Origin: Ascidiella aspersa
Taxonomy: Eukaryota
Direction: 5' to 3'
Length of the DNA: 64,000 nt
Assembly: GCA_963924565.1 (NCBI GenBank)
Contig: OZ004611.1
Span: 22,010,001-22,074,000, forward strand
Part shown: positions 573 to 28,488 of the stretch, in pieces
Layout of the letters: each line of letters opens with the position of its first letter
How positions within the stretch are numbered: the stretch's first letter is position 1
Made by a program: the position numbers and the translations under genes
Notes under the pieces: generated by a model
Database searches by the model: none
What the model saw: only the letters and a program-made list of their open reading frames with translations
What the model was told of the DNA's origin: nothing

Positions 573-1691
573 ATGAAAATAGGCCAGCAAACTTCAGCCC
601 ACGCAGGACATGTTTCTCAAATCAATCAGCCGGAATTGATTTGTGCTAAAGTGGTCAACATTGTTGAGATTCTTGGCGTCCTTTGATCGGAGCAAATTTC
701 GTCGTGTACGGAAAACGCAACAACAAGTGGAAAAGAAAGTCGACTCAACAAAATTCGAATAACAGCAATCCAAGGCCGGTTTTTGTTGTTACAATTTGTG
801 CAATTGTGTTTGCACTACTTCATCTTGCTTCGGTTCAGGTCGCTTTTAATGTTGGTTATGGCAGAAACCATCTCAGTTGTGAGATTGTCAGTTATGTTTC
901 CTACAACCTCTTCACTTGCTTTTACGCATGTTACTATCTAGTTATTTGGTTCAGGCTGCATTACTTTTACAAGAAAATGTCGCTTATACACGAGCTAAAA
1001 CCTTGGATGAAGGTCGTAAAGTATTTGATGTTGGTATTGGTTGTTTTCGGCTGTTTAATGACGGGCGGAATTTACTCGTTTCATAGACATATGGAACCAT
1101 CGGCATTAGGTTGTATTATAAAGCACAGAGGTGATGCATCGCATTGGTCGACAGCTATCGGCTTTGGGATAGTTTGGCTTGGACAGGCGACGATGATCTT
1201 TCAATTCTTGTATCCACTTCGCCTTCAGCTGCAAGGCAACACTGCAAACGAGATCATGCGAATTGCCAAACGATCGGCCATCATTGCAACTATTGGCGGC
1301 CTTACAGACGTCGCAGGCATACTAATACTTAGATATGCCTTGCCTCGCAACCGACCTGCCACTGTTTTCCTTGTCGTGTTTGATCTTGGCCTATTCATCA
1401 ACCTGCTTTGCGTTCTGCTAACTTACGAAGGCTGGCCAAAAAATAGTAACTTGTATTTTAAGAAAGAAGTCAGCTTGTCCCGCCGCTGAAACATCAGTGT
1501 ATAACGTCCAACAAGCGTTTAACGTCGAACCAGGGTCCAAAAATGTGCCTAACGCCGAAACTATGACCAACGCCGATCAAGTGTCTAACTTCAAACCAGT
1601 GCCTAACGACAAAGCAGTGCTTAAAGCCAAACCAGTGCTTAACGACCAACCAGTGCCTAAAGACAAAGCAATGGTCAACGACGACCTATAG
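573..1691 (+). pseudogene. Intronless 7TM receptor-like paralogue 1, two frameshifts (pseudogene or indel sequencing errors)
   Basis: ATG 573 gives MKIGQQ...SQINQPELICAKVVNIVEILGVL. A 1-nt deletion at ~684 (ctt tga tcg ga where paralogue 3 has ctt tgg gtc gga) shifts into ORF 683-1489, which carries the family motifs YYLVIWFRLHYFY, GC, QFLYPLRLQL..IAKRS and FD...INLLCVLLTY..W. An extra A in the run at 1438-1443 shifts again; removing it gives WPKIVTCIL (paralogue 3: WPEMVTGMVL) and joins ORF 1497-1691. Confidence 0.8.
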
Positions 1692-1735
1692 TGCCTAATA
1701 AAGTTCTCATCGGCGAACTAGTACCTAACGCTTAT
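1545..1735 (+). repeat. Degenerate 18-bp (6-aa) tandem repeat in the C-terminal tail of paralogue 1
   Basis: Units such as cagtgcctaacgacaaag, cagtgcttaaagccaaac, cagtgcttaacgaccaac and cagtgcctaaagacaaag; translates as [24 protein letters not shown] and continues degenerately past the stop. Confidence 0.75.
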
Positions 1736-3414
1736 TCATCAGAAAACAAGTGATTTAAAAAGATGATAACTGCATAGTAGGTAGGGCACTAAATGTTTGG
1801 CAATATAAAGAGGTCCTTAAGGCACGTTTTTCTATTTGTTGCTTCAAAACTTGTTGCTAATTGTACGTTTGTGTCGAAGTTTGTTGCAACGATGTTGCCC
1901 ACCTGCTTGGTTGTCACGTTTAAATTTGAATACGGAAAACATGACTATGACCATTCTATTAACGTAAAAGGGTCTATCAATGTGTTTTGTTTCCTTCAAA
2001 ATGCTTATTTTTCTGACACATTTTCCAACTAGATTGTATCACAGACTACGGACAAACATATTACAATCATGTCAAATGTTAATTTGTCGAAATGTTTTAA
2101 TTGCGTAACCAGATGTACGCGCCTTTAGTTAATATTTTTTAGAGAGTCACGTATTGCCTTTCGTTTTTAAGAAACCTGCTCGTATGTATAACTTTATGCA
2201 TATAAAAAAAAAAAGACTGTGAAAACAAACTAATGTAATTCCATTTTCAATAAAATGTGCGTCGTTCAGCAACACACCATGTCATGTGAGAAACAATCAA
2301 ATGTCGCTTTCCTGGATTCGCAGACCTATAATCGGCTAACAATGCTTAAAACACCTATGGAATTACATGCTGGCCTTTGAACAAGAGTTATATGGAGGGA
2401 ACTGTAGGTCACTTGCCTCAGTTACCCCTTTACGGTAGCACGGATATTACTATAGACAGTATAGAGTATAGAATATATTAAAGACTATTAAACGAGATTC
2501 AGAAAACAAAGCTCAAAAAGTAGGAATTGCTACTTTTATGCCTACCTTAACTATTTTAGTTTGTCGTTTTCATGCTCAAATGGTCTGTAGGTACGAAAAT
2601 GCCTTAATTTGCGGATATGTTTCATAAGTTTCGGACACATGGATAATTTATCTCTGGGTTTCCGCTACGAAAATGAAAGCCACGGTGATTTCAAGAACGC
2701 ACACAAAATCAACTAATCTTACGGATGCACATATTATAAATCACATTGCAAAGAACTTACAAACTCACAGCGATAATAAAAATAAATAATTCGGAAAAGT
2801 GCATTTAAACACAAACAAGTAAATATTTAAAAAGTACTTGTTCAATTGAAGTCAAACAGTACTTAAAACATTGAACTGTATTTACAAAAAAGCAGAATTA
2901 AAGGATAGGTGGTTTACAGGAATTGAACAAACGCCATATATATACAGTTAATTAGTCATCTAAGTTTAAAGTTAGACGTACAGTGTTGCTTAGTTGTAAA
3001 AAGACTCCACATTTTAGTTTTATAATCATTGCTTTTTCGATTACTGTAATGACGTTGTTAGGACGGCTGAAATTTTTCCCAAGTGTTTGGGTACGGCTAA
3101 TGATAGAAATTGGTTCTCAATCTTTCACAAGTGGTAACCTCTTTCTATGGACTTTTACTTCGTGTCCTTCCTTTCTCAACAATATAAAAATGCTTCGCAT
3201 AAAGTCACAAAGGAGGTTTCTAAAGTTATAATAAAAACGAAAATTAAAGTTTAACTGTCTATAATTAAATAAAACGTGTATGTGTTCCCCCTAAAGACTG
3301 TGAAAAAGCGCTGGTGTAGGACATACATTTGAACGTGGCATAAAAAGCAATTACGAGAAAAAACAGTCAAACTTAAAAACAACTTAATTGCAAAACCTAC
3401 AAATAACGCGACCC

Positions 3415-4452
3415 TTAAATGTTTCCCGACGACGCAGTCAGGGCGGACGGCTGCGGTGAACCTACTGGTATTTCAGCCTTCCCGCGTCGGCAAAGCACGA
3501 TACTCCGCCAGGACACAAACGTTAGGAGAACACACAACAGGTCAACCACCACGTTGACGTCGAACAACAGCTGGTTGACGTGTTTCGTCGCGTCGCCGGG
3601 CACCAAAATCACGTTGGCGACCACGGCCAGCAGGTCGGTGATCACACAGAGGCTTGCCGCGGCCGTGAGACGCTTGGCGATTTGTCGGATCCTTGCCGCG
3701 TTGCTGCCGCGAAGCTGGAAACGAAGCGGCCTCAGGAACTGAAAGATCATGGCCGCTTGCGAGAGCAGCACGACCGCGAAAACGAGGTACAGAGGCCAGA
3801 AGACAGGCGACTGGTGCCGGTCGACGCAGCCTCGTCGCGAACTGGTAAAATCCAGTTTGTAGGTATACACCGCTACACTGGCGACGACGCCGGACGTGGC
3901 AAATACCAGCGTCAGCCACTTGAGCAGGCGCATCCACGGGCTGAGTGCATGGATCCGGGCAACGTTGGCGTAGAGCCGGTTTAGGCGGAACCAGAGCGCC
4001 AGGTAGTAACTGAGGTAGAAACACGTGTAGAAAACTGCCGACAGGTCGAGAACTATGTCGCACAATTGCGAATCTTCAACCCCGTAACCAACGTTGAAGG
4101 CGAACTGACTGCTGACCAGTCGTAGCCAGGCGAAAGCAGCGGCGGCAAGGCTGCTGATCAGCACTGGCGATAAACCGTTTCCAGGTTTCCTCTTGTCATT
4201 AACTCGTTGCCATTTGTGGCGTCGGATTCCGTGGACAGCGAAGGCAATTACTATCCAGGTAACACATGCGATGGCGATGCCGCCCACCGCCGCCGACGCC
4301 AGCCATTCTGGTTGCGTGAAACGGGAGAAGTTACCACTGGTGTCGTTTAGATGGTTACCACTGGTGTCGTTTAGTTGGTTGCCGCTGGTTTCGTTTAGTT
4401 GGTTGCCGCTGGTGTCACTTAGATGTGTCTTGGTGTCGTTCGCAGCTTGCAT
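3415..4452 (-). CDS. Intronless 7TM receptor-like protein, paralogue 2 (345 aa, intact)
   Basis: Single ORF with seven hydrophobic segments, N-terminal N-glycosylation sequons, Cys at the top of TM3 (LCDIV) and in ECL2 (GCVD), and family motifs YYLALWFRL, QFLRPLRFQLRGSNAARIRQIAKR and FD...VDLLCVLLTFVSW. Confidence 0.9.
   Translation of the reverse strand: MQAANDTKTHLSDTSGNQLNETSGNQLNDTSGNHLNDTSGNFSRFTQPEWLASAAVGGIAIACVTWIVIAFAVHGIRRHKWQRVNDKRKPGNGLSPVLISSLAAAAFAWLRLVSSQFAFNVGYGVEDSQLCDIVLDLSAVFYTCFYLSYYLALWFRLNRLYANVARIHALSPWMRLLKWLTLVFATSGVVASVAVYTYKLDFTSSRRGCVDRHQSPVFWPLYLVFAVVLLSQAAMIFQFLRPLRFQLRGSNAARIRQIAKRLTAAASLCVITDLLAVVANVILVPGDATKHVNQLLFDVNVVVDLLCVLLTFVSWRSIVLCRRGKAEIPVGSPQPSALTASSGNI
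4327..4422 (-). repeat. 24-bp (8-aa) tandem repeat x4 in the N-terminus of paralogue 2
   Basis: LSDTSGNQ-LNETSGNQ-LNDTSGNH-LNDTSGNF. Confidence 0.9.
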
Positions 4453-6164
4453 TTTGTCAAACTTTTAAATTAAAAAAGACTTACAGAGGCCACCTGCGAA
4501 AGTTGAACGAAATTTAGATGTCAAACTGGTAATAACTGCCGCAGAATTTAGATTTGTTAGATAGTATTTGCTACTTCGATTTGTGTAAGGTTTTTTTTTG
4601 TCTTGGTTTGGGACCCTTTTTACTGTCAGCTGAGTATGCAAGTCAGCCTGTAATGACAAACTTTTAAAATATAAGTAAAACAAAATCCATTTCTGAAATC
4701 AGTTGAAAAACAACGTCCATCGCATGTCCAATCTGTACATTTTTCAGCCGTTTGTATCCATATATTTTTGTGCGTAACGGATATCAATCTGACTACAAGA
4801 ACCTGGACTAAACGCTGCCCTGCTAACCTGTAAATAACCTACGATTTTCTTAGTGTTTAATAATCATGATATTTTTTAACAGTTGCCAAACAAGTTTGAA
4901 ACGCAGACTTAGAATTTCGTTTTCCGTCAATATCCATTGACTACAAAGTACCATATTTAGATAAAACCTTACAAACAAACAACATGGATAGCTAGATATG
5001 TGAATACCGTTCTTGAAAACTGGCTCCGCAATACTAGTGAGCATTAATTTGCACAGGCCTCCTTTATAAAAAATCGTTCAATGGTATTTTGGAAAATACA
5101 ATACTCTGTCCCATCAAGAAACTGACAGAAGTTGCACGCGACAAAGTTCATGGCCCGTGAAACGAGCTGCAGCCTATAAATAAGCCTTTAAACTTGGCAA
5201 ACGCGTGAATAAGTCTATACAAGCGTTGTGTGCCGCGTGGTGCGCAACTGTTTAGAGCTTTTAACAAACGGCTGAGCGCAGCAACCGTATTGCGCAACCT
5301 ATGTATGTTTATTTTAATGGAATCCGAATTTGCTTGCGGCAACAGCCAGCGAGCCATATAGTATCGTATAGTTCTGCGCTTAAACAATCGGTTTCGAGCA
5401 ACACAGAATCAACGCCTGATGAAGTCATAGTCGAATGTGTCATAGCGGGTTGTTGTGACACATTCTCGGCAAATAATAAAGAAGAGCGAAGGTGTCAAGT
5501 GAATAAAAACTGTGCTGGTTTAAAAACCATAAAACTTTAATTTAATGACATATATCCAAAAAATCAAATCAAGAAAGAAGATTCATGTTGGCATATGACA
5601 TCACCAAATGACGACGAGTTAGTAATTACCCGATACTCGAATACTGACCGATTTTTCAGTACCTAAAAATGCCTTAAAACTTTTCAACTTAAACCCAAAT
5701 TTTACGAAAACGTCTGAATACTAGACTTTGTAATAAAGTAAAATCTGCAAATCAAGCATTAGAATAAAACGACTATCTTGTCGTAACGATATACGCTACC
5801 TGTCTAAGAAAAATCAACAACCGCAAGGGTTATTATCACCTTAACAAAAAAATGTCCACTAATAAGGCTGTCGAAAATTTTGCGATGGGCCCACGGCATT
5901 TGCGAGCATCTCAAGCAAGCGGACTTCCGTACCATGTAACCAAGCTTTCGAAGTGCCATTTTCTTGTTGAGAGTTGATAAAGTGTTTTTTGCACTTGCGT
6001 CAATGGCATGTCGCCCATCTGCATAAGTGACGCATGTCCTACGGCATAGTGCATGTCGCGCTGTACCATAACCATTTATCTTGGCACAGTATTTCGAGTG
6101 TTATGTTTATTTACTCTTGGCTTGCGCGTTCTTCGAAATATGACAACAACGCGTTTGAATGGAA

Positions 6165-6560
6165 GTGTTTCTAACAAGTCCTTTGGGAAAGACTTTAGTC
6201 CCAGTTAATCATGCTCAAGTCTTCTCCAAGTCAAGTAATTGATGCTAAAATACAACGTTAAGTATATTAAATTGGATAAACTCGATTATGAGCAATAACT
6301 CAACTGACGATAACAAAAACGCAACATATAGCCAGAAAAAATGTTTTACGTGTAAAAAATAGGATAAATAACACAATTTTACAAAATAATTGTCTAATAA
6401 AAACGTTTATTTTCATCCGAGTCATTTGATTAAATTACTTAATACCGAGTAAATAGATCGTCTTAAATACTTAAGTCAAGTTAAGTAATTTAAAAAACTC
6501 ACTCAAGATTTTTAATCTAATTTTTTTTTAAATGACAACTATAATGGATGTCTCTAGTTA
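6165..6560. mobile_element. Degenerate GACTT/AAGTC-repeat MITE-like element
   Basis: aagtcaagt motifs at both ends; the end gtgtttctaacaagtc resembles the reverse complement of the end of the 18210-18755 copy. Confidence 0.5.
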
Positions 6561-8128
6561 TGCTTTGACTGCATTTCTCGGCAAAAGGCTGAAGACTGAG
6601 AATATTTTTTGTGGCACGCCGATTTATGTTGTTGCATATTTTTTAAGTTTTGCAGTATATCTTTATAGCGATAAACTTGATAAATAACCTTCGGGCTGCC
6701 CTATCCTTTTAAAAAACGGTGCAAAAATTGCAAAAAGATTTTATGCAATTTGCACATTTTTCATGTTTTATATATTTCCTGTATTGCACCTTCGGTTTAG
6801 AGGAGTCTAAAATAGTATGCATTATTGGCATAAATATTTCTTCTGAGAGAATCACATTCGTCGACACTTTGACTGAATTTTACAGAAATGCTTGCAAAGG
6901 TTCTTATATCTATGCGAGTTTGTGAATTTTTGCCCACCGTATAGAAATCGTTTTTACCTTAAAAGTGGCGTATGGTTACGTCAACCGTAAATAAACGGTC
7001 ACTTCCATCCCTGTAATTTTGAAACGCTGCAATCGAGAATATTTGTTGTTCTCATTTCGTGTACTTCCATTTGAGGTTGAGGTAAGTCGCGGATTTGCGA
7101 AAAGGTTAAATGTCTAGCGCATTCGAAAACGGTCGCTGCCGGCACGCGTTATACAGCTTTATATATAGCTTTGAAGTGTGCAGCAATTAGGACTTCTTTT
7201 CTATTGATTTGTGTAAGGCAAATGTTATATTGAATGGCAACGAATGCAGTTAAACTGTTAGATGAGCAGACAATTTGTTTTTAGACCTGAAGGAAGCAGC
7301 CGTACAGTGAAGCCGTTGCCTAATTTAAGCAGAAAGTTAGTGGCCCCATTTGTTCCTCTGCGAGTATACTGAACTTTTTCATGCGACATTTTAAAAAGAC
7401 AAAGCATTTGAAGAAAAACTGGTTAGAACAGCAATAAGAAAGCGTGTTTCGCGTTTGCGCCAACTGACGTTCGTCTGCAGAGCTGACGCAACTTCCAATA
7501 TGCTGCACACCACGCGCCAGCAAACCTATTCATCTTGTTGGCCTATGAAGGCACGATGTAGTTTTTCGTGTGTTTACACCCATCGGCTTGACCGTGTGTC
7601 GAAAATTAGACGGCTCCACACTTTGTGTAATCGTAATGCAGGGCCGCGTCACTTGTTAAACATTTGGGACAATGGAACTTGTTTTCTTTGGGTGTCGTGT
7701 AAGCCAAACGGATCCAACGAAATATACTGAGTCCAACGTAAGCGAACTTCACCTAAATTTTGTGCGGTAACATACTTCAAGAAGTTCTTAAACATAAAAA
7801 TATTAAATTGGTTACATCGAAGTTAATTTTGATTAAGGCAATATAATTTATGTTTACGCAGGTAAATTCGTTTTTAGCGAAGGCGATGGTCGGCCCTAAC
7901 GAAAACCCGTGACATATAGGGAACCGCTCACAAACGTAAAACCTTAAGTTGTAGAAGCCATTTTTTGCATTGTGTGATATTCAAACAAATACGTAATCCC
8001 GGTACCATACTGTGTCCAACGTAAGTAAAATCTCGTTCAAAAAGCAGTGTGACGTCGCCGATCCTTTATTTAGGCGACGATTGCTCTGTCTGCCTCGTTT
8101 AAGATCGCATACCAGCGACCGACTAGGC

Positions 8129-8478
8129 CAGCGATTCTCAACCAGTGGGCCATGGCTCACTAGTGGGCCATGGGAACATTTTGAGTGGGCCACAGATCAA
8201 TTTAATAAAGCTATATTTAATGAAGAATTAAGTTTTATTCGTGTCACTACACTTAATTTTACAGAAATAATGGCTTGGGATGGAATGTAAATTTGTTGTT
8301 CAGCAGCTACAGTATCTCACAAATGCACGGTTGAAGAAATATTCTGTTTTGAAACATGTTCTGCTGTTTTTTGTTCTAAACCTATTTCATAGTTGTTTTT
8401 TCCATAAACATTATTGGGCCACAGATTTTTTTGTGCATAGAAAATGGGCCACGAAAGAAAAAAGGTTGAGAATCACTG
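8129..8478. mobile_element. hAT-type MITE (350 bp) with perfect 8-bp TSD
   Basis: TIRs cagcgattctcaacc / ggttgagaatcactg; identical flanks gactaggc (8121-8128 and 8479-8486); homologous copy at 62248-62595. Confidence 0.9.
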
Positions 8479-9397: not shown

Positions 9398-9531
9398 GTG
9401 TAAAGTGGGTTAAACTTCAGATTTACATTAAATTACGCTGAACGTTATACATGTTTGCACTGCATTCTGCGCATGTGATATGACGTTGCATTGTAAATTG
9501 TAGGATGTAACTATATACTAACGCGTTAGAG

Positions 9532-10455
9532 ATGGGAAACTTTTCACTCTGTTACGAGCCCGGTTGGGTTGTGGCGGAATTCTTTAACGTCCTAGAAACG
9601 CTCGGCGTCCTTTGGGTCGGAGCGAATTTCGTACTGTACGGAATCCGCAACGGCAAATGGAAAGCCGAAAGTGAGTCGTCGGAAATCGCCAGCGCAAATC
9701 CGCGTTCCGTTTACGTCAGTACGGTCGCTGCCTTTGCGTTGGCGCTGCTTCGCTTAATCTCAAGTCAGGTGCTGTTCAACCTGAACCACGCTTGCAAGCT
9801 CGCAATGGACACTTCCAAGCTGCTCTACGTTTGTTTCGTGATTTGCTACTACCTAGTTCTATGGTTCAGGCTGCACTACCTCTACAGAAGAATCGCAAAA
9901 GTGCGCTCGATCGGTCGACGAACTGAATGTGCTAAGTGGCTGACACTGGTTGCGTTCGCCCTGGCCAGTGTCGTAGGCTACCTGCTGCACGCCGCCAGGC
10001 TGACAGCACACGGCTCCCCACGAGGCTGTGTGGCCGAAAACCAGTCGTGGGTACACTACTAGCCGCTGCTGGTAGCCTTTGCAGTCGGCTGGCTAGCTCA
10101 GTCACTGCTGGTCGTCCAGTTCCTGCTGCCACTTCGCTTTCAGCTGCGCGGCTCCAACGCTGCCAAGATCCGGCGAATCGCAGCGCGCTCGGCGGTCATT
10201 GCGTCACTGAGCGTCGCCAGTGACGTCACAGCCCTGGTGACGAACTTGCGCCTAAGGCCGCGCGCCCAGTTCGTCACGTCGGCCATCTTCGACGCCGTTC
10301 TATCCGTGCACGTGTTCTGCATGATATTGACTTTCGAGTTTTGGCCCGAGATGGTCACAGGTATGGTTTTAAAGCCAAGAGGCGCCCCACGCCTGCGATC
10401 CGCAACCATCAGCGTCAACACTGTAGCGTATCGGGAAATGCAAACATTTAGTTAA
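9532..10455 (+). pseudogene. Intronless 7TM receptor-like paralogue 3 with one in-frame nonsense codon
   Basis: ORFs 9532-10062 and 10237-10455 share a frame. TAG at 10060-10062 sits where paralogues have Trp (HY*PLLVAF vs FWPLYLVF/VWPPYVAF); the downstream frame continues with QFLLPLRFQLRGSNAAKIRRIAARS and FD..LTFEFW. Confidence 0.88.
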
Positions 10456-11900: not shown

Positions 11901-12833
11901 TCATAGGGACGTATCCGCTTTTGAGCTGCTGGGGAGGGACCCGCTGCGAGCACGACTGCTGGCAGTCGGCCACAAAATTCCTCGCCAGGCCCCAAAGGTG
12001 AATATAACGCAGACGAAGTTCACCATCATGTTTGCGTCGAACACGCTCAGGTTGACAGCTTTAACTGCCTCCTTAGGGATAACCAGCACATCCACAAAGG
12101 TGGTGACCAAATTGGCAACGACTGACACCGTCGCGATAGCTGTCGAACGCTTGGCGAGCCACACGATCTTTTTAGCGTTCCTGGTGCGCAGATGAAAGCG
12201 CAAAGGAAGCAGGAACTGGACGATCATCATCGATTGTGCCAGCAGCACGGTGCCGAAAGCGACGTAAGGCGGCCAGACCACCGACTGTGCTACGCCGCTT
12301 TCGACGCAACCGCGCTGCGAACTTTTAAATCTTCCCAACTTTGTGTACACTACGCTTGACACAAGAAAGCCGGCGGCGGCTAGTAGCAGCATCAACCATT
12401 TGACGCATTTCGCCCAGCTGCTGATCGTGTGTATGTGCGACATCTTTTCGTACAAATAGTGAAGGCGAAACCACAGGATCATGTAGTAGCCCATATAGAA
12501 ACAGCAGTAGATCACGACGGAACAGTCAATTGCTATATTGCAGTTGGCCGAAGGTGTACTAGTGTAGCCTATGTTGAATGCAACCTGGCAGCAGATTAGT
12601 CTGATCAGTGCCAATCCAATAACGACAATAGTGCTGATGTAAACCGACAAGGGATTGCTGTTCTCTCCAGAAGGCTGGTTTAAAGACTTAAGTTTGCCGA
12701 TAAAGTGTTTGATGAAGTTTATTCCGATCCACAGCACAAAGAGCACGGCACTGATGTTAAAAACTTCTGCTGCTATCCATGCCGGTTGATTTAAGCGTGA
12801 GAAATTTCTTGAAACGTTGTTCAATGCAGCCAT
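11901..12833 (-). CDS. Intronless 7TM receptor-like protein, paralogue 4a (310 aa, intact)
   Basis: ATG at 12833 (MAALNNVSRNFSRLNQPAW...), seven hydrophobic segments and all family motifs. The upstream TTG extension is broken by a 2-nt deletion in the duplicate, favouring this ATG. Confidence 0.9.
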   Translation of the reverse strand: MAALNNVSRNFSRLNQPAWIAAEVFNISAVLFVLWIGINFIKHFIGKLKSLNQPSGENSNPLSVYISTIVVIGLALIRLICCQVAFNIGYTSTPSANCNIAIDCSVVIYCCFYMGYYMILWFRLHYLYEKMSHIHTISSWAKCVKWLMLLLAAAGFLVSSVVYTKLGRFKSSQRGCVESGVAQSVVWPPYVAFGTVLLAQSMMIVQFLLPLRFHLRTRNAKKIVWLAKRSTAIATVSVVANLVTTFVDVLVIPKEAVKAVNLSVFDANMMVNFVCVIFTFGAWRGILWPTASSRARSGSLPSSSKADTSL

Positions 12834-13177
12834 ATACCCGTTTAGTTGAGCCAAATTAAGATAACGCCTAGGCAAAAAAGCCTACCTTTTTCGAGAAACT
12901 GTAACACCGGTCAGTTTCTCTGCTCTTCAATTTGAATGCACTACGCAAATTTGTGGTTTGGGAAAACTTTGACACAAGAGGCTCTCTATCGCTCTCTTCC
13001 TCCGCTTTTTTCTTTTTCCCCTTTACTCTCTCTCTCCCCCTCTCTTTCTCTCTCTTTTACTCACTCCTTTACTGCGTTTTATCCAAAAATGTCAATAAAG
13101 CTTTCAGTCGAGATTGCTTATATCTATGAAAGTAATTGGAAACAATTAGGATTTTAATGACAAAGGTTCGTCGTAAT

Positions 13178-13590
13178 TAGGGATGTCTGATTCTTGACAT
13201 TTTTCCAATACCGATACCAGATATTTTGACATAAAGTATCGCGGCCTGGTCCGATACCAAATGACGGTATTACTATGCCTAAACAAGCAAAATAGATAAA
13301 GGTGAAACCAACGAATTGTATCAGATAACTGTAGGCAAAAGTATGCATAACTTGTTTAGGCGCTACCATTTTGGTAAGAAGGTTTAATAGTTACTACCAT
13401 TGGTCACCTACTATGTTTTGAAAAATTTACCGTTTTAGGTACAATCTCTGTTTTGACAAAAAATCATGACTGATTTTTATATATAAATTATGTATAAGAT
13501 CGTCACCGATACCAACCTGTTATCGGACGAGTATCGATACTAACACTGGGCATCGGGTATCGAAACTGAACCGATATTATCGGACATTCG
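13178..13590. mobile_element. CGATA/ATCG-rich MITE-like element (duplicate at ~22687-23100; relative at ~33040-33400)
   Basis: Starts tagggatgtctgat, ends atcggacatt; ccgatac/gtatcgg subterminal repeats. The 33040 copy reads tagggatgtc...gacatcacta. Confidence 0.55.
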
Positions 13591-14842
13591 AAACCCAAAC
13601 GTTTGTCTCTTATAAACCGTAATTGGAAAGCTTTCAGAAATTTCTACGGAAAATAAGTACTCAATTTTCGATGCACAAATGTCAAATGCACCAACGTTTT
13701 AACGCTACCTGCTACATGCAACATGTTTGTTTTACTTTGCTGGTGGCGGAGCGGTCATTTCCTCGGTTATACAATAATACAAAGGGACGTGTACCGCTGC
13801 TGTTGACTCCCACACTACTGTAATGCAGCGTTTATTCATGTTTTAAACACGCAATGTTAGAATGATATACACAGTTCTATGAACAAGTATGACAAATAAA
13901 AAAAACAGTATGACGCGCTTCCACCCAAACCGTCAAAAGTCTTCAACTGTTCAATGTCGGTTAATAGCAGGCTCTTAAACGCTTATGAGTTTTATGCTGC
14001 TATTATATTGCGCCTATAGCTGGAAAAAGTTCTAGGAACAACTTTGACGAAGTTTAAGCATTTACCCAAAACGCAATGTCGGTTAATGAACGGCTTTTCA
14101 AATGCTTATAAGTTTTTTGCTGCTATTATATTGCACCTATAGATAAAATAGTAATGCTGGCCGATATTACATTGCACAAGAAGAAACTTTATTTTAAGTT
14201 ATTTACAATCCAATTCACATTTTTCGTTTACCGTAAAAAATGATTTATACTGTGCGTGCGCCCCTAAGTTTCGATGAAAATACACGTACGAGTCGTTTAG
14301 AGAGATATTTAAAACCCAGCCCGCAATTCTACCAAGTATACGCTATAAAAGTCAAACCTTGGCACCAAAGCGCGTTTAAAAAACACACGGCCGCAGCAGA
14401 GCTACAATTTTGATTAAAAGCTAAATGGTAAAGTCTTGAACACAATTAACATATACTAGTTCAAACGCAATACACATAACGAATGTGAGCTTTGTGTTAA
14501 CCGCAAATTTTTATATGTTTTTCCTTTGAATTCGGCCTTTTTATGATACGTTTTACGACTATTTTCAAGAAATCTGGCCGTTACCCCTTATAAGGGTTAA
14601 ATAATATGACTTACGAATCTTTAAACTTTCCTGTCTTAGTCAAAGTATGTCATGAATACGTTCTAGTCTTTCAAAAACTTTTTAAAGACTGGAACTTATT
14701 CATGACTGACTTTGACTAAGGCAGGAAAGTCTAATGAATACATGCTCCCATTTAAAGCCATTGTCGTCATTTAAGTGTAAGGGGAGATATCTTCATATTT
14801 TACACATTCAATTTGTCATACCATGATTTACAATTACTTTGT

Positions 14843-15769
14843 TTAAGTTGCCGTATCTGCAGGCTCGTGGTCGCCTAACGCGCAGAAGTTCGGTTTTAGG
14901 ATTTCGCTCCAACGCTGAAACGTAAACACAAGGCAGAGCAAGTTGACAAGCATAGTGGCGTCGAACACCGTCAGGTTGACATGCTTAACCGTGTGCTGAG
15001 GAATCAAGACAACATCGGTAACGACCGCGATAAGATTGCATACGACGGACAGAGCTGTGATGACAGTGGAGCGCATTGCGATTCGCAGTATCTTCCGCGC
15101 GTTGTTTCCTCGCATCTGAAAGCGTAATGGATACAGGAACTGGAAGATCATCATGGATTGTGCGAGCGTTAACACGCCAAAAACAACGTAGAGTGGCCAA
15201 AACGTAGTGAAAACAATCGCTCTATCGACGCAGCCCTTCGACGAACTGACAAAGTTTTCCCCGTACGTGTATCCAACGCACGCCATTACAAAGCCTACGT
15301 TGGCCAGTAGCAGCATGAGCCATTTCACGTGCTTAACCCAGGGCTCTAGCGTGCGAAGGAGCGCGATCTTCTCGTACAAGAAGTGGAGACGCAACCACAG
15401 CACCAAGTAGTAACCCATAAAAAAGCTGCAGTAGGCAACAACGCACCAGTCAAATGCTATATCGCAGCTTCGTGTAGACTGGACGCTGTAGCCAACGTTG
15501 AACGCGATCTGTGAACAGACGAGTCGAATCAGTGCCAATGCTATCACGACGAGAGTGCTGAGATAAACTGGTCGAGGAGTGCAGGTCAGGTTAGACTGCC
15601 GGCGACCTGTGTCGTCGTTCCACTTTGCGATGCGCAGCCCGAAAACGGTAAAACTGACCCCGAACCAAACGACGATTAGCATCGCTATTATGTTGAAAAC
15701 CTCCGCCGCTATCCATTCAGGTTGATCGAAACGCGAAAAGTTTCCCGGAGAAGTACTAAACGCACTCAT
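14843..15769 (-). CDS. Intronless 7TM receptor-like protein, paralogue 5a (308 aa, intact)
   Basis: Single ORF: GNFSRFDQPEW, SCDIA, YYLVLWLRLHFLY, GCVD, QFLYPLRFQMRGNNARKILRIAMRS, FDATMLVNLLCLVFTFQRW. Confidence 0.92.
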   Translation of the reverse strand: MSAFSTSPGNFSRFDQPEWIAAEVFNIIAMLIVVWFGVSFTVFGLRIAKWNDDTGRRQSNLTCTPRPVYLSTLVVIALALIRLVCSQIAFNVGYSVQSTRSCDIAFDWCVVAYCSFFMGYYLVLWLRLHFLYEKIALLRTLEPWVKHVKWLMLLLANVGFVMACVGYTYGENFVSSSKGCVDRAIVFTTFWPLYVVFGVLTLAQSMMIFQFLYPLRFQMRGNNARKILRIAMRSTVITALSVVCNLIAVVTDVVLIPQHTVKHVNLTVFDATMLVNLLCLVFTFQRWSEILKPNFCALGDHEPADTAT

Positions 15770-18209
15770 GATTGTTAGGCCTTATAATAACAAATCAGGT
15801 TCTTCTAATTTGATCTAAAAATAAAACTTTAAAGTTTTTATCCCTGTCTTCTTTCTTGACACCGTTTGGGTTTTTTTTAAGCATTGGTCTACCATTATAC
15901 ATCCTTAAAAAAACTTAGAATTGTCCAGATTTTACTACGTCTTATAGACGCTAAGGGTAAGCGGAAAAATAATCGTTTAGCAAGTTTACATTTTAGCTGC
16001 ATACCTACCCCAATGAGCTATATATATAAAGTAACATACTTTGATGAACAGAAAAACAATAATTAATCATGTTGTATTTGAAACCTATATAAAAAATACT
16101 AAGCTATAGCCTTTAAACCCATTTCAAGAGCTTAAAAAGAATTTGCCACAGTCAACCACTGTGTCTCACTGTATTGTTTTCTAGGAAATATTAGATCAAC
16201 AATTTTCGGTTGAACTTTTGTCTTCTCCAAACCATTGAGCAACGTAGTTTTGTTTCCAACGAACGTTCTAGGGTCACTGTCGGTACAATAGGAAGTATCC
16301 ATTCTTGCTCCAAACTCAATCCTATTGCGTTGTGCGCTTTAAAATCTCTTGGCGAAAGTTCTATATTGTCATACGTCACACCAGGCAGTTTCCTTTTGGC
16401 GTCGATATTATAGCAAATGGTTGGAGAAACCTCCGACCATTAGTTATTTATTATGAAATAAAAATTTACGGCAATGAATAAATGTTTTAACAAATTTTTT
16501 TTCATGCGACACCTAATTTTAGAAAATATATTTCTGATAGCTTTATTAACAGCATTTTGTTAATTCTATGCGCTCGAACCATTTTTTACAACCGAGCACA
16601 GTAATTGTCTCAAACTATGGATTTTATCAATTAAGGATAAAAAGCCTTGCTAAGCAGGCATGGAAAAAAACTCTTCATTATCAACGTACTTTATTATATA
16701 CCACTTGTTTCTTTTTCGCGATTAAAATGTCCTTCGTGACTTTTGAAGGTTCGCGATACCTGCCCTATATGTTCATAGGAATATGTACAGAATAGGTTAA
16801 AGCTACTTTCAAAATGCTCAACCTAATAGTCAACTAATATCATTTTCTATTGACTAGCAATGAAGTGAATAACCTTTGTTCATAAAGGACTTAATACAGC
16901 ATAAACTTTATCACCACCTTAGCAAAAAAGTATACTTTCATTAGGAAATCCTTTGGACCCTTATAACAGTTATTTAAGCACCATTTTTTTAGGTTATTTG
17001 TTGACCCTTTGATAAGTTGATGGAAAATCCAGCATTAGACTCCTCGCTCACAAATCATTCCTCGCACATTAACACGGGTTCTTAGACTCTCTCAATCACT
17101 TTTTTGTAATTTTTAATTTGTACCTAAGTTTTTTTTTTTTTATTTAATTTGTGCCTCATGCTAACATTTATATGTTTTTGTTGCCAAGGATGCCGCCTTT
17201 AGGTGGAACCCTGTTCAGGTTGGTATGTTATGATCTTGTGATCGCCATATTATAATCATCTATTCATAATTTATATATATTTAAATCTTCGGTTAACAAC
17301 TTGATAAATGCCTCCTAATTTTCCATTTCGTTAAAACTTTTACTTTCGTTTCGTTAAATCCAAAGTACAAAACAATTTCGGGTACTACAAGCTCCTAAAT
17401 TTGTAGTTCAAACCAATGTTTAGACTGACAACGCCAGGAAATGTATAGCATTCATGTTAAAAAGTAAACAAACAAATATTTAGTGGCACCGTAAGTGCTG
17501 GCCATCAAATCCATAGCAAAAAAATTTGCGTTATTATAAAAATAAGCGTGTACGTCTGCTTCATTGTAAGATAACTAATTTAATATTTTTTTCAAAGTAC
17601 GTAATGCTGTTCAAAAAGTATGAACTATTAGGTCGCTCATTCCATTAAAATGAAAAAACAAAAGCTGTTAAATTATGTATAAGGGACTAAAATAAACTTT
17701 CGTTTAAAAACTTGTACGTACGTAAATAATACGTAAAGTAGCAGCAAGAAATACAAGTGTCAAAGAATGTTTTAATAAACCAAAATCAGTTATTGTAAGT
17801 AACCAAATAATTCAAAGTCAACAGGATTTTATTCGGCGAACGTTAAACTTGAAAGCTGCTACACCGCAGTTTTCACAAAAAGTGTCAAAATAAAGCTTTA
17901 TTTGGTGTTAGAAGTTACAAAAAAATGAAGGCAAAACATTACTGTTACAATTACCTTGTTATGAGTTCGATTTTGAAAAGTAATACGCGAGAGAAGCCGT
18001 AACTATGCTTTTATCGATACGGTTTTTCATTGCAAAGTCTAAAACGTTTAAACATATTTTACGATTTGTTAGAAATAGATTTGATAGGAATAGACGAACG
18101 TTTTACCAGTATGAGGCATCAATAGTATCATGTTTTGTTCCACAGGGGGAGGGGAGGGGAGGGGTGGCATTTGTCGCCCTCTGAAATTTTAAAATGCGAT
18201 TATTATTAT

Positions 18210-18755
18210 AATGACTTAAGTCAATGACCTGACTTGTAATGACTTAAGTCAATGACCTGACTTAAGTCACAGTTCTTAAATGACTTGACTTGACTTGAGT
18301 CTTTTGGGCAAAAATACTTGACTTGACTTGACTTAAGTCTTTTGGGCAAATGACTTGACTTGACTTAAGTCATTTGGACAAATGACCTGGGTTAAAATAA
18401 ATTGTTTTAATTAAGCAATTAATTATAAAATTACGTTATTTAGCCCAATCTTTGCACATAAAAGAATTTGCTTGTTATATGCTGCTTTTATGTTATTTTT
18501 TACTTGAGTTGCTCATAATAATCGGAGGAGTTTGCCGGTTTTCATAATTTAAAGTTTTACTTTTTTGACAAGGGCTGGACTTGAATTTGACTTGCTCTAA
18601 TTATGACTTGACTGAGACTTGACTTGGGCAATCGATGACTTGGACTGGGACTTGACTTGTTATTTATTCAAAAAGACTTGACTTGTACTTAAGTTATTTT
18701 ACCAATGACTTGAATGGAACTTAAGTCATTTCAAAATGACTTGTTTACAAACTGG
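18210..18755. mobile_element. GACTT-repeat MITE-like element (copy A)
   Basis: Dense gacttgacttgac / gacttaagtc arrays at both ends around an AT-rich core; the same family occurs at 27724-28265 and 49915-50446. Confidence 0.75.
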
Positions 18756-18978
18756 TTCCTACAGATATAAAAACGCACGTAGGCCTACATATTAGTATCA
18801 TAGGTACTGAAATAAAATTATGTGAAAATATTAAAATTCCCCACCCCTGGGAATTTTTCTGGGGGCGCCACTGAATATCCTAGTATACTAATCGAGTAAA
18901 CAGCGTGTATATTGTATAGTTATTCTGTCAGTAACGTCCCGAAAGATCTTATCGGGATCCTTGCATCTTGTGCTCGTC

Positions 18979-21308
18979 TCAAATCAAAGCCTCGTCCACC
19001 CTGCTTTCCATGGTGTGACTAGGAGCAACTTCCTTTAATTCCTCTTCAGACTTCCCAACGGTCTTTTTCGACTCCGGAGAGAGCGGCTCCATCTGGAGCG
19101 ATGCTGACTTCCGAAAGCAGCAGCGCCTCCTGATCCGCATTAACCGGATCAGGCAGAGGATAACAATCAGGAGAATGAGGGAGAAGATTCCGATGAGAAC
19201 GTAGCCGACCACCGACGCTCCCGCCACATCTTGGTCAGGAGGATTGGTCGTCACGTCTAAACGACATAAGCACAGTTTCAAATGTGAAAAGAAACGTCAT
19301 TAGATGATGAAATAATAGTATTATTATTATTTTTTTTCGGTAATATCGGGATCTAAGCCTGCTCAGACATTTCTAGTTGTTGATCTTTTTTCCATATCGT
19401 AAGCTTTGCGTAAGTATATAGTATTCTGCTCTTGTTGATTAAAGTTGTTTTGGATTGTTTTTACAACCTTTGTGAGTTTGCTTGAAAACGTCATTAGACT
19501 TAAATTTTACCCTTTGCAACAGTTTTAGAGCGTTTGTAATGTCTAACGGCATGAGCAAAGTTTTAAATGTGTTTTACAGGCGGGCTCCTCGACCCCCCAA
19601 AAAACACCTTTGGGTAACCGTAAAGGCAATGCATACATTAAATAGGTTTACAATGACTAAATAAAACTTAAAAACCAACTGAGCGAAACCGACGTTATTG
19701 GTCGTCACGTCTAAACGACATAGGCAAATTTTCAAATGTGGTTTTACCTTCGGACTTCGTGTCCATTCACTTGCAATTTATGAAAGTGGCGAACGGAGAA
19801 ACCCTAGCATTACCCTGAAACAGATTTGTAGAAAACTAAGCGTTTTCTTTTTACTCCTATTTAAAAAAAAACACTTTTGATTATATTTGAATTAATAAGC
19901 GCAAATCGAAAATGCTCTGAAAAATTCATAAAGACAATGCTGACATATAAACACGTTTACAACGACTGATGTAAACATAAATATAACAACTGAGCGAAAC
20001 CGACATTATTGACACGATTTAACAACTATTTGAAAAATTATTTGTTACCGTTATCCTTCATACTGAGGATTCAATTATTAGAAAAATGCATTTCACTCTT
20101 AAAACGAAAAAAAGAGTGACTTTGACATTCTGCCTTTTGCGATTGCTGAAACTAGTCACTTCGATATTATACCTAAACAGTCTGAGGTATGATAATTTTA
20201 AGTTATTCTCCATTTTAGGCAATTCTGTTCTGCACTAACGAGTAACGATTGTTACCAAGTGCATGTTTCACTGGATTTATATTAAAGTTACGAACCTTGG
20301 CTAAAGTCAGAATGAAAGTTCAAATTTCCATTATGGATTCATTTGTTTGTAACCACTAACTCAATTAGCTTGTAAAATCAAGTAGCTAACTGGACATATT
20401 GCGACACTGATTTTACGAATGTTTACGAACGTTTACAAACGTTTACGTCTGTCTGTCGACGGAAGTTTATTACAACATGTAAATTATATAGTCATTAGCA
20501 GAGCCAAGCTACATTTACTCTAAACTAGATAAAATTACCATCGACGGTGTCTGGATTGCAAGAACGACAATCCTTCCCAAGAGTTTGTTCGGGGGGACAG
20601 GTACAAATCACTTTGCCACTTGAATCGTCGCAACCACCAGAGCAATACGAATTAAAGCTGGAATAATTCTGTCGAAATAAAGGACGAATTTCTGTGCGCA
20701 CGCATATATTGTACCAATATGTTGTGGATAACGTGCAATGTGACAGTCAATTTCTTCTAACCCATTTCCCAAACGTATCTAGTAAAATCAGAAATAAATT
20801 CATTGTGTATACATGCCTACTATAATTTAACCTAATAACTTAACGTTTATACAGGGCAATGAAAAAAACATAATATCCCTATAATTGTGTGCAGTTGGGA
20901 CGACTAAGCAATAACAGTCGATATTAAAATAATTTTTGTACAAGAGAGTTCAGACCGGAAAAACTATTTCTTGACGTATATTTATTGAAATGTATACGTT
21001 AACAATCGTCCAAAAAAATATATAACCAATTACAACAGCACCTTTGCTGTTGAATCCTGTTCGTAAGTGTACCTTGATTAAACATGACAAGAAACGTCAT
21101 TAGACTTGATCACACAAAATTTTACCCTTTGCAGTATCGGTGGGTTTGTAACTAAGGTGTAACTTGCCTTTAATGGACATTTGGTGATGGGCAGAATCGT
21201 CAGCGGTTCGAGACTGATAACCTTGCATCCTCTTTCGGTGAAGTTTTGTCCGAGTTCGGAAAACGGCGACTCCTGTCCTTTGGTGGGTCCAATTTTCGAT
21301 TTTTGTGA
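18979..21308 (-). pseudogene. Orphan duplicate of the last three exons (ZP tail, EGF, TM/cytoplasmic) of the CUB-ZP gene
   Basis: Exons 21308-21168, 20668-20539 and 19256-18979 match 30825-30685, 30180-30051 and 28766-28489. The first has lost its acceptor (AG to TG at 21309-21310) and a Cys (SPCYE to SPFSE). Confidence 0.85.
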
Positions 21309-21379
21309 CAAAAAACAAACAAATACAAAACTCAGAGTGGGTTAGAAAATATGTAGATATACGCTTAGTTTTAGTCCCT

Positions 21380-22342
21380 TCATGAACATGACATAAAACG
21401 ACGGAAAATATTCTTTGACGTATCCGCCTTTGAGCTGCTGGGGAGGGACCCGCTGCGAGCACGACTGCTGGCAGTCGGCCACAAAATTCCTCGCCAGGCC
21501 CCAAAGGTGAATATAACGCAGACGAAATTCACCATCATGTTTGCGTCGAACACGCTCAGGTTGACAGCTTTAACTGCCTCCTTGGGGATAACCAGCACAT
21601 CCACAAAGGTGGTGACCAAATTGGCAACGACTGACACCGTCGCGATAGCTGTCGAACGCTTGGCGAGCCACACGATCTTTTTAGCGTTCCTGGTGCGCAG
21701 ATGAAAGCGCAAAGGAAGCAGGAACTGGACGATCATCATCGATTGTGCCAGCAGCACGGTGCCGAAAGCGACGTAAGGCGGCCAGACCACCGACTGTGCT
21801 ACGCCGCTTTCGACGCAACCGCGCTGCGAACTTTTAAATCTTCCCAACTTTGTGTACACTACGCTTGACACAAGAAAGCCGGCGGCGGCTAGTAGCAGCA
21901 TCAACCATTTGACGCATTTCGCCCAGCTGCTGATCGTGTGTATGTGCGACATCTTTTCGTACAAATAGTGAAGGCGAAACCACAGGATCATGTAGTAGCC
22001 CATATAGAAACAGCAGTAGATCACGACGGAACAGTCAATTGCTATATTGCAGTTGGCCGAAGGTGTACTAGTGTAGCCTATGTTGAATGCAACTTGGCAG
22101 CAGATTAGTCTGATCAGTGCCAATCCAACAACGACAATAGTGCTGATGTAAACCTACAAGGGATTGCTGTTCTTTCCAGAAGGCTGGTTTAAAGACTTAA
22201 GTTTGCCGATAAAGTGTTTGATGAAGTTTATTCCGATCCACAGCACAAAGAGCACGGCACTGATGTTAAAAACTTCTGCTGCTATCCATGCCGGTTGATT
22301 TAAGCGTGAGAAATTTCTTGAAACGTTGTTCAATGCAGCCAT
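21380..22342 (-). pseudogene. 7TM receptor-like paralogue 4b: nonsense mutation and 3' end replaced at the duplication junction
   Basis: Duplicate of 4a with TCG(Ser) to TAG at 22154-22156; the C-terminus ...ADTSL* becomes ...ADTSKNIFRRFMSCS* by read-through across the junction. Confidence 0.88.
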
Positions 22343-24350
22343 ACCCGTTTAGTTGAGCCAAATTAAGATAACGCCTAGGCAAAAAAGCCTACCTTTTTCG
22401 AGAAACTGTAACACCGGTCAGTTTCTCTGCTCTTCAATTTGAATGCACTACGCAAATTTGTGGTTTGGCAAAACTTTGACACAAGAGGCTCTCTATCGCT
22501 CTCTTCCTCTGCTTTTTTTCTTTTTCCCCTTTTACTCTCTCTCTCCCCCTCTCTTTCTCTCTCTTTTACTCCCTCCTTTACTGCGTTTTATCCAAAAATG
22601 TCAATAAAGCTTTCCGTCGAGATTGCTTATTTCTATGAAAGTAATTGAAAACAATTAGGATTTTAATGACAAAGGTTCGTCGTAATTAGGGATGTCTGAT
22701 TCTTGATATTTTTCCAATACCGATACCAGATATTTGGACATAAAGTATCGCGATCTGGTCCAATACCAAATGACGGTATTACTATGCCTAAACAAGCAAA
22801 ATAGATAAAGGTGAAACCAACGAATTGTATCAGATAACTGTAGGCAAAAGTATGCATAACTTGTTTAGGCGCTACCATTTTGGTAAGAAGGTTTAATAGT
22901 TACTACCATTGGTCACCTACTATGTTTTGAAAAATTTACCGTTTTAGGTACAATCTCTGTTTTGACAAAAAATCATGACTGATTTTTATATATAAATTAT
23001 GTATAAGATCGTCACCGATACCAACCTGTTATCGGACGAGTATCGATACTAACACTGGGCATCGGGTATCGAAACTGAACCGATATTATCGGACATTCGA
23101 AACCCAAACGTTTGTCTCTTATAAACCGTAATTGGAAAGCTTTCAGAAATTTCTACGGAAAATAAGTACTCAATTTTCGATGCACAAATGTCAAATGCAC
23201 CAACGTTTTAACGCTACCTGCTACATGCAACATGTTTGTTTTACTTTGCTGGTGGCGGAGCGGTCATTTCCTCGGTTATACAATAATACAAATGGACGTG
23301 TACCGCTGCTGTTGACTCCCACACTACTGTAATGCAGCGTTTATTCATGTTTTAAACACGCAATGTTAGAATGATATACACAGTTCTATGAACAAGTATG
23401 ACAAATAAAAAAACAGTATGACGCGCTTCCACCCAAACCGTCAAAAGTCTTCAACTTTTCAATGTCGGTTAATAGCAGGCTCTTAAACGCTTATGAGTTT
23501 TATGCTGCTATTATATTACGCCTATAGCTGGAAAAAGTTCTAGGAACAACTTTGACGAAGTTTAAGCATTTACCCAAAACGCAATGTCGGTTAATGAACG
23601 GCTTTTCAAATGCTTATAAGTTTTTTGCTGCTATTATATTGCACCTATAGATAAAATAGTAATGCTGGCCGATATTACATTGCACAAGAAGAAACTTTAT
23701 TTTAAGTTTTTTACAATCCAATTCACATTTTTCGTTTACCGTAAAAAATGATTTATACTGTGCGTGCGCCCCTAAGTTTCGATGAAAATACACGTACGAG
23801 TCGTTTAGAGAGATATTTAAAACCCAGCCCGCAATTCTACCAAGTATACGCTATAAAAGTCAAACCTTGGCACCAAAGCGCGTTTAAAAAACACACGGCC
23901 GCAGCAGAGCTACAATTTTGATTAAAAGCTAAATGGTAAAGTCTTGAACACAATTAACATATACTAGCTCAAACGCAATACACATAACGAATGTGAGCTT
24001 TGTGTTAACCGCAAATTTTTATATGTTTTTCCTTTGAATTCGGCCTTTTTATGATACGTTTTACGACTATTTTCAAGAAATCTGGCCGTTACCCCTTATA
24101 AGGGTTAAATAATATGATTTACGAATCTTTAAACTTTCCTGTCTTAGTCAAAGTATGTCATGAATACGTTCTAGTCTTTCAAAAACTTTTTGAAGACTGG
24201 AACTTATTCATGACTGGCTTTGACTAAGGCAGGAAAGTCTAATGAATACATGCTCCCATTTAAAGCCATTGTCGTCATTTAAGTGTAAGGGGAGATATCT
24301 TCATATTTTACACATTCAATTTGTCATACCATGATTTACAATTACTTTGT

Positions 24351-25277
24351 TTAAGTTGCCGTATCTGCAGGCTCGTGGTCGCCTAACGTGCAGAAGTTCG
24401 GTTTTAGGATTTCGCTCCAACGCTGAAACGTAAACACAAGGCAGAGCAAGTTGACAAGCATAGTGGCGTCGAACACCGTCAGGTTGACATGCTTAACCGT
24501 GTGCTGAGGAATCAAGACAACATCGGTAACGACCGCAAAAAGATTGCATACGACGGACAGAGCTGTGATGACAGTGGAGCGCATTGCGATTCGCAGTATC
24601 TTCCGCGCGTTGTTTCCTCGCATCTGAAAGCGTAATGGATACAGGAACTGGAAGATCATCATGGATTGTGCGAGCGTTAACACGCCAAAAACAACGTAGA
24701 GTGGCCAAAACGGAGTGAAAACAATCGCGCTATCGACGCAGCCCTTCGACGAACTGACAAAGTTTTCCCCGTACGTGTATCCAACGCACGCCATTACAAA
24801 GCCTACGTTGGCCAGTAGCAGCATGAGCCATTTCACGTGCTTAACCCAGGGCTCTAGCGTGCGAAGGAGCGCGATCTTCTCGTACAAGAAGTGGAGACGC
24901 AACCACAGCACCAAGTAGTAACCCATAAAAAAGCTGCAGTAGGCAACAACGCACCAGTCAAATGCTATTTCGCAGCTTCGTGTAGACTGGACGCTGTAGC
25001 CAACGTTGAACGCGATCTGTGAACAGACGAGTCGAATCAGTGCCAATGCTATCACGACGAGAATGCTGAGATAAACTGGTCGAGGAGTGCAGGTCAGGTT
25101 AGACTGCCGGCGACCTGTGTCGTCGTTCCACTTTGCGATGCGCAGCCCGAAAACGGTAAAACTGACCCCGAACCAAACGACGATTAGCATCGCTATTATG
25201 TTGAAAACCTCCGCCGCTATCCATTCAGGTTGATCGAAACGCGAAAAGTTTCCCGGAGAAGTACTAAACGCACTCAT
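24351..25277 (-). CDS. Intronless 7TM receptor-like protein, paralogue 5b (308 aa, intact)
   Basis: Duplicate of 5a with six amino-acid differences; ORF intact. Confidence 0.9.
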   Translation of the reverse strand: MSAFSTSPGNFSRFDQPEWIAAEVFNIIAMLIVVWFGVSFTVFGLRIAKWNDDTGRRQSNLTCTPRPVYLSILVVIALALIRLVCSQIAFNVGYSVQSTRSCEIAFDWCVVAYCSFFMGYYLVLWLRLHFLYEKIALLRTLEPWVKHVKWLMLLLANVGFVMACVGYTYGENFVSSSKGCVDSAIVFTPFWPLYVVFGVLTLAQSMMIFQFLYPLRFQMRGNNARKILRIAMRSTVITALSVVCNLFAVVTDVVLIPQHTVKHVNLTVFDATMLVNLLCLVFTFQRWSEILKPNFCTLGDHEPADTAT

Positions 25278-28265: not shown

Positions 28266-28488
28266 TTCCTACAGATATAAAAACGCACGTAGGCCCACAT
28301 ATTAGTATCATAGGTACTGAAATAAAATTATGTGAAAATATTAAAATTCTCCACCCCTGGGAATTTTTCTGGGGGCGCCACTGAATATCCTAGTATACTA
28401 ATCGAGTAAACAGCGTGTATATTGTATAGTTATTCTGTCAGTAACGTCCCGAAAGATCTTATCGGGATCCTTGCATCTTGTGCTCGTC

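Follow-up and report, generated by a model that had tools for sequence, protein, structure and literature searches.

Single-exon seven-transmembrane receptor genes of Ascidiella aspersa belong to a tunicate orphan superfamily with a putative chemosensory role

A 64-kb window of the genome of the ascidian Ascidiella aspersa, the whole stretch analyzed here (C5:22,010,001-22,074,000, in an assembly of 308.6 Mb and 75 contigs), carries between positions 573 and 25277 a cluster of seven single-exon loci for seven-transmembrane (7TM) proteins resembling G-protein-coupled receptors (GPCRs). Our results suggest that these genes probably belong to a large orphan superfamily of 7TM receptors, restricted to tunicates and named here after its Ciona member KH.C3.516, whose proteins would act at the cell surface, share a common transducer, and most likely sense external chemical cues. 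The family is not new, since it was already noted in 2020 through KH.C3.516, yet it is essentially uncharacterized.

Tunicates are the sister group of vertebrates, and their larvae pick settlement sites by chemical cues. According to reviews and censuses, tunicates have no orthologues of the OR, V1R, V2R, and TAAR receptors or of the insect and nematode chemoreceptors (PMC7776563; PMC2396169), and in a 2026 paper on ascidian larvae, the receptor behind their taurine chemotaxis is still given as unknown (PMC12922724). Johnson, Razy-Krajka, and Stolfi (2020, EvoDevo 11:15) reported KH.C3.516 as the second most enriched transcript of the axial columnar cells of the Ciona papilla, encoding a 7TM protein that has no BLAST match outside tunicates and sits in a tandem group (PMC7397655). 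In situ hybridization and single-cell RNA sequencing (scRNA-seq) showed expression specifically in axial columnar cells, and a green fluorescent protein (GFP) fusion was found at their exposed apical tips (PMC7397655). The same authors proposed the family as tunicate chemoreceptors, and also raised a response of KH.C3.516 to transmitter released by neighbouring sensory neurons (PMC7397655). We found no later paper characterizing the family in the searchable literature. A preliminary description of the window, made from its sequence alone, had called the family uncharacterized, which is right in that no characterization was found, but the family is not undiscovered, as the same chemoreceptor proposal was published in 2020 (PMC7397655).

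RESULTS

The window carries seven copies, three of which are broken

Listing of long open reading frames (ORFs), tblastn with the intact proteins, and a scan of the translated frames with a family hidden Markov model (HMM) concordantly placed exactly seven paralogous loci at 573-25277 of the 64-kb window, on both strands. Transmembrane helices are given below as TM1 to TM7, and extracellular and intracellular loops as ECL and ICL.

573-1489, plus strand (c1): frameshifted pseudogene with its Met at 573, holding the N-terminus and part of TM1, followed by a shift near 680-686.
3415-4452, minus strand (c2): intact 7TM gene, 345 aa.
9532-10425, plus strand (c3): pseudogene whose frame is interrupted by a single TAG following ...SWVHY (ECL2/TM5); its ECL1 is shortened.
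11901-12833, minus strand (c4): intact 7TM gene, 310 aa, with the Met of MAALNN... at 12831-12833.
14843-15769, minus strand (c5): intact 7TM gene, 308 aa.
21380-22342, minus strand (c6): near-identical copy of c4 (99%) whose frame holds one stop (NPL*VY) and whose C-terminus is altered.
24351-25277, minus strand (c7): intact gene, 308 aa, 98% identical to c5.

Four of the seven copies are intact, and three are broken, one through a frameshift and two through in-frame stops. The count of seven single-exon paralogues in both orientations given in the preliminary description was reproduced by all three approaches, but its size range of ~310-370 aa was not, as the intact proteins measure 308-345 aa. 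In each intact copy, all seven helices lie within one uninterrupted ORF, and the window copies score against the family profile with E values of 1e-98 to 1e-132, far beyond chance. Reading c1 from the Met at 573 yields ~36 codons (…QINQPELICAKVVNIVEILGVL, then a stop), and the main ORF of this locus occupies 683-1489 in another frame. The N-terminus of c2 (window ~4300-4452, minus strand) is built of four tandem 8-residue repeats, SGN[QH]LN[ED]T, each contributing an N-glycosylation sequon, which gives c2 a longer, presumably glycosylated tail.

The proteins have a GPCR-like architecture with a conserved cytoplasmic face

Two alignments were used, A1 with 20 intact paralogues (mean column identity of 40%, 14 invariant columns) and A2, a superfamily alignment of 59 sequences with 20% mean identity. 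The first sequence of both is c5 without its Met, which defines the residue numbering, and c5 was also the query in most searches. The AlphaFold2 model obtained with A1 as input (mean predicted local distance difference test score of 78, predicted template modeling score of 0.79) shows seven long helices and a short helix 8, and when it was compared with the PDB by Foldseek, all of the top 50 matches were GPCRs, with E values from 1.6e-3 and TM-scores of only ~0.5. Across A1, lysines and arginines average 15.1 per protein in intracellular loops 1-3 vs 3.3 in extracellular loops 1-3, and N-x-S/T sequons are concentrated in the N-terminal tail (1.45 per protein). This charge bias, along with the N-terminal sequons, indicates an N-out, C-in topology as in GPCRs. 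An inverted arrangement, which the preliminary description had held out as evidence against its own reading, was not seen, and the insect OR/gustatory receptor (GR) or PAQR type of topology was rejected, as both the charges and the glycosylation sequons point to N-out.

Just two columns of A2 are invariant, C101 (top of TM3) and C179 (ECL2), and six further positions are nearly invariant (G178, W124, Y131, Q203, P213, and F283). The Cys at the top of TM3 and the Gly-Cys pair of ECL2 listed in the preliminary description are thus both borne out over 59 sequences, and we infer from the alignment a disulfide between the two cysteines. Fold, topology, and cysteine pair together support the 7TM GPCR-like architecture that had been proposed.

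The motifs described for the family proved to be real when 25 intact paralogues of this genome were compared. W-x-[RK]-x-x-x-L-Y at the end of TM3, [KRM]-R-[SLI] at the start of TM6, and the TM7 motifs were present in all 25, and F-x-F-x-x-P-[LT]-[RQ] in 20. None of the 25 contains CWxP, NPxxY, MAYDRY, or KAFSTC, and DRY is missing from the end of TM3, with DRY-like triplets in five paralogues at non-homologous positions, so that the absence of these signatures is upheld.

Conservation is unevenly distributed over the protein. In A1, mean pairwise identity reaches 0.428 in the inner halves of the helices and the intracellular loops vs 0.311 in the outer halves and extracellular loops (permutation P = 1.5e-4), and the same comparison in A2 gives 0.268 vs 0.197 (P about 1e-3). 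Cytoplasm-facing residues make up 20-21 of the 30 most conserved positions. A conserved inside and a varied outside would fit receptors that keep one intracellular partner while their ligand-facing half diversifies, and the conserved cytoplasmic face is compatible with a shared transducer, without being proof of one.

The superfamily is large and arranged in tandem arrays

A six-frame search of the genome with c5 returned 77 matches, mostly open frames of 300-390 aa without internal stops. About 32 of them fall between C5:21,872,662 and 22,035,277, which makes the window the distal end of a ~163-kb array. The HMM built from A1 also picks up far more divergent ORFs elsewhere in the genome, with E values of 1e-23 to 1e-79. 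When the A2 profile was applied, all 123 candidates scored, out of 234 first-look candidates, passed at E ≤ 1e-13, on contigs C1-C6, C8, and C9. About 67 of these loci are full length and uninterrupted, at least 15 have in-frame stops, and the remainder are fragments, the totals of at least 123 loci and ~67 intact ones being lower bounds. The genome search with a paralogue HMM, which the preliminary description had put forward as a check, has revealed a large expansion, and in this genome the superfamily outnumbers the 57 matches to Pfam 7tm_1 (PF00001), many of which represent individual exons of spliced genes.

Additional tandem arrays, made up of divergent subfamilies, are located at C6:24.33-24.37 Mb, C6:25.11-25.16 Mb, C3:31.04-31.10 Mb, and C4:27.94-27.97 Mb. 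One of these other arrays includes the KH.C3.516-like gene of this genome, L041 (C6:24342397-24343233). Some superfamily members carry a long insertion in ICL3, as in L033 (C5:32452500-32457000) and L031 (C5:16275500-16279500), whose open frames have 567 aa and 416 aa, respectively, and many external matches align to the profile in two stretches that are split at ICL3.

Named relatives are ascidian and include KH.C3.516

A single-sequence search with c5 in a collection of 5.8 billion proteins gave no match, which reflects the word-index limit of that search and not absence of relatives. When 1.84 billion representatives were searched exhaustively with the profile, 944 clusters passed at E ≤ 1e-3 and 631 passed at E ≤ 1e-10, and the best 150 of the 944 were listed. 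Most profile matches are unnamed proteins from environmental, ENA, JGI, and Logan assemblies. The named relatives among the matches listed are all ascidian and labeled "uncharacterized," namely, Ciona intestinalis XP_078491754 and its paralogues, several Clavelina lepadiformis proteins, and one Phallusia mammillata protein. Among named relatives, the superfamily is restricted to tunicates.

Phylogeny was analyzed with FastTree on 111 rows, comprising 35 proteins of this genome and 76 external ones (covering external matches down to rank 60 and proteins of 280-470 aa). Twenty-three window-type paralogues of this genome form an exclusive clade with a Shimodaira-Hasegawa-like support of 100, a result to be read as that of a quick tree, with close relatives of this ascidian possibly missing from the databases. 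Elsewhere in the tree, individual genes of this genome are joined to external sequences. As the tree holds both kinds of branch, the superfamily appears to combine conserved lines with an expansion specific to this species' lineage. The exclusive clade and the tunicate-only named relatives agree with the lineage-specific family proposed at the outset.

The link to the published gene came from a profile search seeded with L041, which recovered P0215, the UniRef copy of KH.C3.516. We recognized it by five internal motifs from the paper's supplement, and it lacks the last 7 residues of the KH.C3.516 sequence printed there. Against an HMM made only of window-type sequences, P0215 reaches 37.3 bits across TM3-TM7 (E = 8.9e-14, calculated for this one comparison). 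L041 is 38% identical to KH.C3.516 and 47% identical to the Phallusia match, is detected by the window profile at E = 1.4e-26, and groups in the tree with Phallusia P0169 and Ciona P0215, bridging the window subfamily and the KH.C3.516 subfamily. Given the score of P0215 and the bridge formed by L041, the window genes belong to the published KH.C3.516 superfamily. Like the Ciona robusta family (KH.C3.516, Cirobu.g00005701), they each encode a 7TM protein in one ORF, lie in tandem arrays, and have named relatives in tunicates only. Unlike it, they represent a different and distant subfamily, with <20% identity to KH.C3.516, that has expanded in the lineage of this species.

No named receptor class can be assigned

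When 44 protein entries, taken from this genome and from other ascidians, were scanned against Pfam, neither a GPCR family nor any other credible family appeared at E ≤ 10. Sequence searches of the PDB returned no relevant match with a single protein and no GPCR with the 59-sequence A2 profile. When A2 was aligned by hhalign with 12 class A ORFs of this genome, the probability was 8.4%, over TM7 and helix 8 only (0.4% in the reversed control), which is not significant and comes from a thin comparison set, as the genome has few full-length single-exon class A ORFs. This alignment puts the TM7 Asn of the family on N7.49 and W286 on F8.50, with an equal spacing of 11 residues, which we take as no more than a hint. 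Since fold searches bring up microbial rhodopsins as well as GPCRs of every class, we cannot assign a class, in line with the preliminary description, which had found no named class for the family. The defensible statement is a GPCR-like 7TM receptor fold whose class is not assignable.

The family has several features in common with class A GPCRs (PF00001, including the vertebrate odorant receptors, 7tm_4), namely, seven helices and a helix 8, an extracellular N-terminus, the cysteines of TM3 and ECL2, a basic residue where TM3 meets the cytoplasm, a proline near the end of TM5, and, in TM7, an Asn with an aromatic residue at +11. The family differs from them in matching neither 7tm_1 nor 7tm_4 at E 10, in lacking DRY, CWxP, NPxxY, MAYDRY, and KAFSTC, in an hhalign probability of just 8%, and in Foldseek TM-scores of ~0.5. 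As with OR, TAAR, V1R, and T2R genes, the window genes have no introns, stand in tandem, and include many pseudogenes. UniProt has automatically named P0215 a [quoted passage not shown] and Pfam 7tm_1 misses it at E 10. The name presumably reflects a PROSITE profile match and is the sole automated link to class A that we saw.

Large, clade-restricted, and divergent 7TM families in tandem arrays that are missed by standard GPCR models are also known as the nematode serpentine receptors (Srg) and the platyhelminth PROF1, but our family matches no Pfam model of nematode Srg or Srx and has no detectable sequence relationship to them. In the ESM Atlas, c5 adjoins unnamed clusters with scores of 0.95-0.96, whose members are all eukaryotic and, where the phylum is known, mostly chordate. 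The nearest cluster bears the automatic name "Serpentine receptor class gamma," and its members of known phylum are also mostly chordate. The nearest clusters with a Pfam family score ≤0.86 and comprise only fungal DUF7703 and THH1/TOM1, which we treat as leads only. A microbial-rhodopsin reading, suggested by VIA-align, was rejected because all 58 sequences compared lack a lysine in the TM7 core and thus could not form a retinal Schiff base.

A recent tandem duplication was followed by gene decay

Part of the cluster lies within a large repeat:

11908-30942: head-to-tail tandem duplication with a unit of ~9.51 kb, its copies at 11908-21425 and 21417-30942 being 97-100% identical.

This event copied c4 and c5 and so produced c6 and c7, which are 99% and 98% identical to them, and the cluster consequently represents five independent lineages and not seven. 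The left boundary of the duplication lies within the c4-type gene, two codons short of the stop, as a result of which the last codons of c6 are replaced by 11 foreign read-on codons. The pair c5/c7 differs at 7 nucleotides, corresponding to six nonsynonymous and no synonymous codons, and c4/c6 differs at 8 nucleotides, corresponding to three nonsynonymous and five synonymous codons. The changes between c5 and c7 could hint at diversifying change, but they are not statistically significant, and the counts are too small for a selection test. The cluster shows tandem duplication and pseudogenization, with three of the seven window copies broken, and the window-type subfamily evolves by birth and death, in which recent tandem duplication is followed by frameshifts and stop codons. 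Beyond the cluster, between 31 and 64 kb, the window holds only short ORFs, consistent with spliced genes.

DISCUSSION

In this work, the observation made in the preliminary description was confirmed, and its interpretation was partly supported. We propose that the proteins of the KH.C3.516 superfamily are cell-surface receptors in which the variable outer half and an ECL2 stapled by a disulfide would bind diverse ligands. The conserved inner surface, formed by W-x-R-x-x-x-L-Y at the end of TM3, F-x-F-x-x-P-L-R after TM5, K-R-S at the start of TM6, and S-F-x-x-W in TM7/helix 8, would contact a transducer shared by all of them, most probably a heterotrimeric G protein. We have fair confidence that the proteins are surface receptors with a common intracellular partner, probably a G protein. 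Their most likely role would be to sense external chemical cues, compensating for the lack of OR, TAAR, V1R, V2R, and T2R genes in tunicates. Taken as a claim of its own, a chemosensory or environment-sensing role stands at close to an even chance, perhaps slightly below it, and we draw it from the evolutionary mode of the family, from the lack of canonical repertoires in tunicates, and from what has been published on a single distant member. The broader idea that the superfamily is an unclassified class of metazoan GPCRs, placed outside the recognized families in all of our sequence tests, serving as the main chemosensory repertoire of tunicates in place of OR, TAAR, V1R, V2R, and T2R, is doubtful at present.

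The ligands might also be endogenous, such as tunicate-specific neuropeptides, hormones, or neurotransmitters, in which case the proteins would still be GPCR-like receptors, not directed at environmental chemicals. Johnson et al. raised a transmitter response for KH.C3.516 (PMC7397655), and some branches, such as that of L041, Phallusia P0169, and Ciona P0215, resemble sets of ascidian orthologues, as would be expected of conserved ligand-receptor pairs. However, tandem arrays totaling at least 123 loci, in which species-specific clades and recent duplicates occur and pseudogenes are numerous, follow the mode of chemoreceptors or immune receptors and not that of receptors for endogenous ligands, and the fast-evolving part of the proteins is their extracellular half, which makes endogenous ligands rather unlikely.

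That mode of evolution brings in surface receptors for non-self or microbial molecules, with functions in innate immunity, allorecognition, or gamete recognition, to which birth-and-death dynamics and lineage-specific expansion apply equally. The six nonsynonymous vs zero synonymous changes between c5 and c7 hint in the same direction, at a level that is not statistically significant. We consider this explanation improbable, as nothing links the family to haemocytes or gonads and the sole expression datum, that of KH.C3.516, is from larval papillae (PMC7397655).

Signaling might also be independent of G proteins, the family then consisting of channels, transporters, trafficking proteins of the TMEM87/GOST type, or rhodopsin-like proteins. 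We give such functions little chance. The TM7 core has a lysine in none of 58 sequences, no GOLD or other extra domain is present, and an N-out topology rules out the arrangement of insect OR/GR and PAQR proteins. The invariant cysteines of TM3 and ECL2, like helix 8, are traits of GPCRs, and the top 50 Foldseek matches are all GPCRs. Finally, three of seven copies are broken, which would suit chance ORFs or mobile-element repeats, but this reading is effectively refuted by frames of 300-345 aa kept at 31-49% identity among dozens of paralogues, by motif-level constraint and biased conservation, by NCBI gene models for the Ciona and Clavelina relatives, and by a Ciona member with in situ and scRNA-seq expression (PMC7397655).

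Coverage of the family in the searchable literature amounts to one paragraph and a supplementary tree, and there is no Pfam model for it. With this work, topology, the cysteine pair, conservation of the cytoplasmic face, and species-specific expansion are documented quantitatively, the divergent subfamilies are connected by a profile, and the intact genes are available as a defined set. A chemoreceptor function had already been proposed in print, and these data make the proposal directly testable.

In conclusion, the intact genes and pseudogenes of the window belong to the KH.C3.516 superfamily, whose at least 123 orphan 7TM loci in this genome are an obvious candidate repertoire for tunicate chemoreception. 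If the proposed role is true, species-specific arrays like the one at the end of which the window lies would encode receptors for settlement, food, or conspecific cues.

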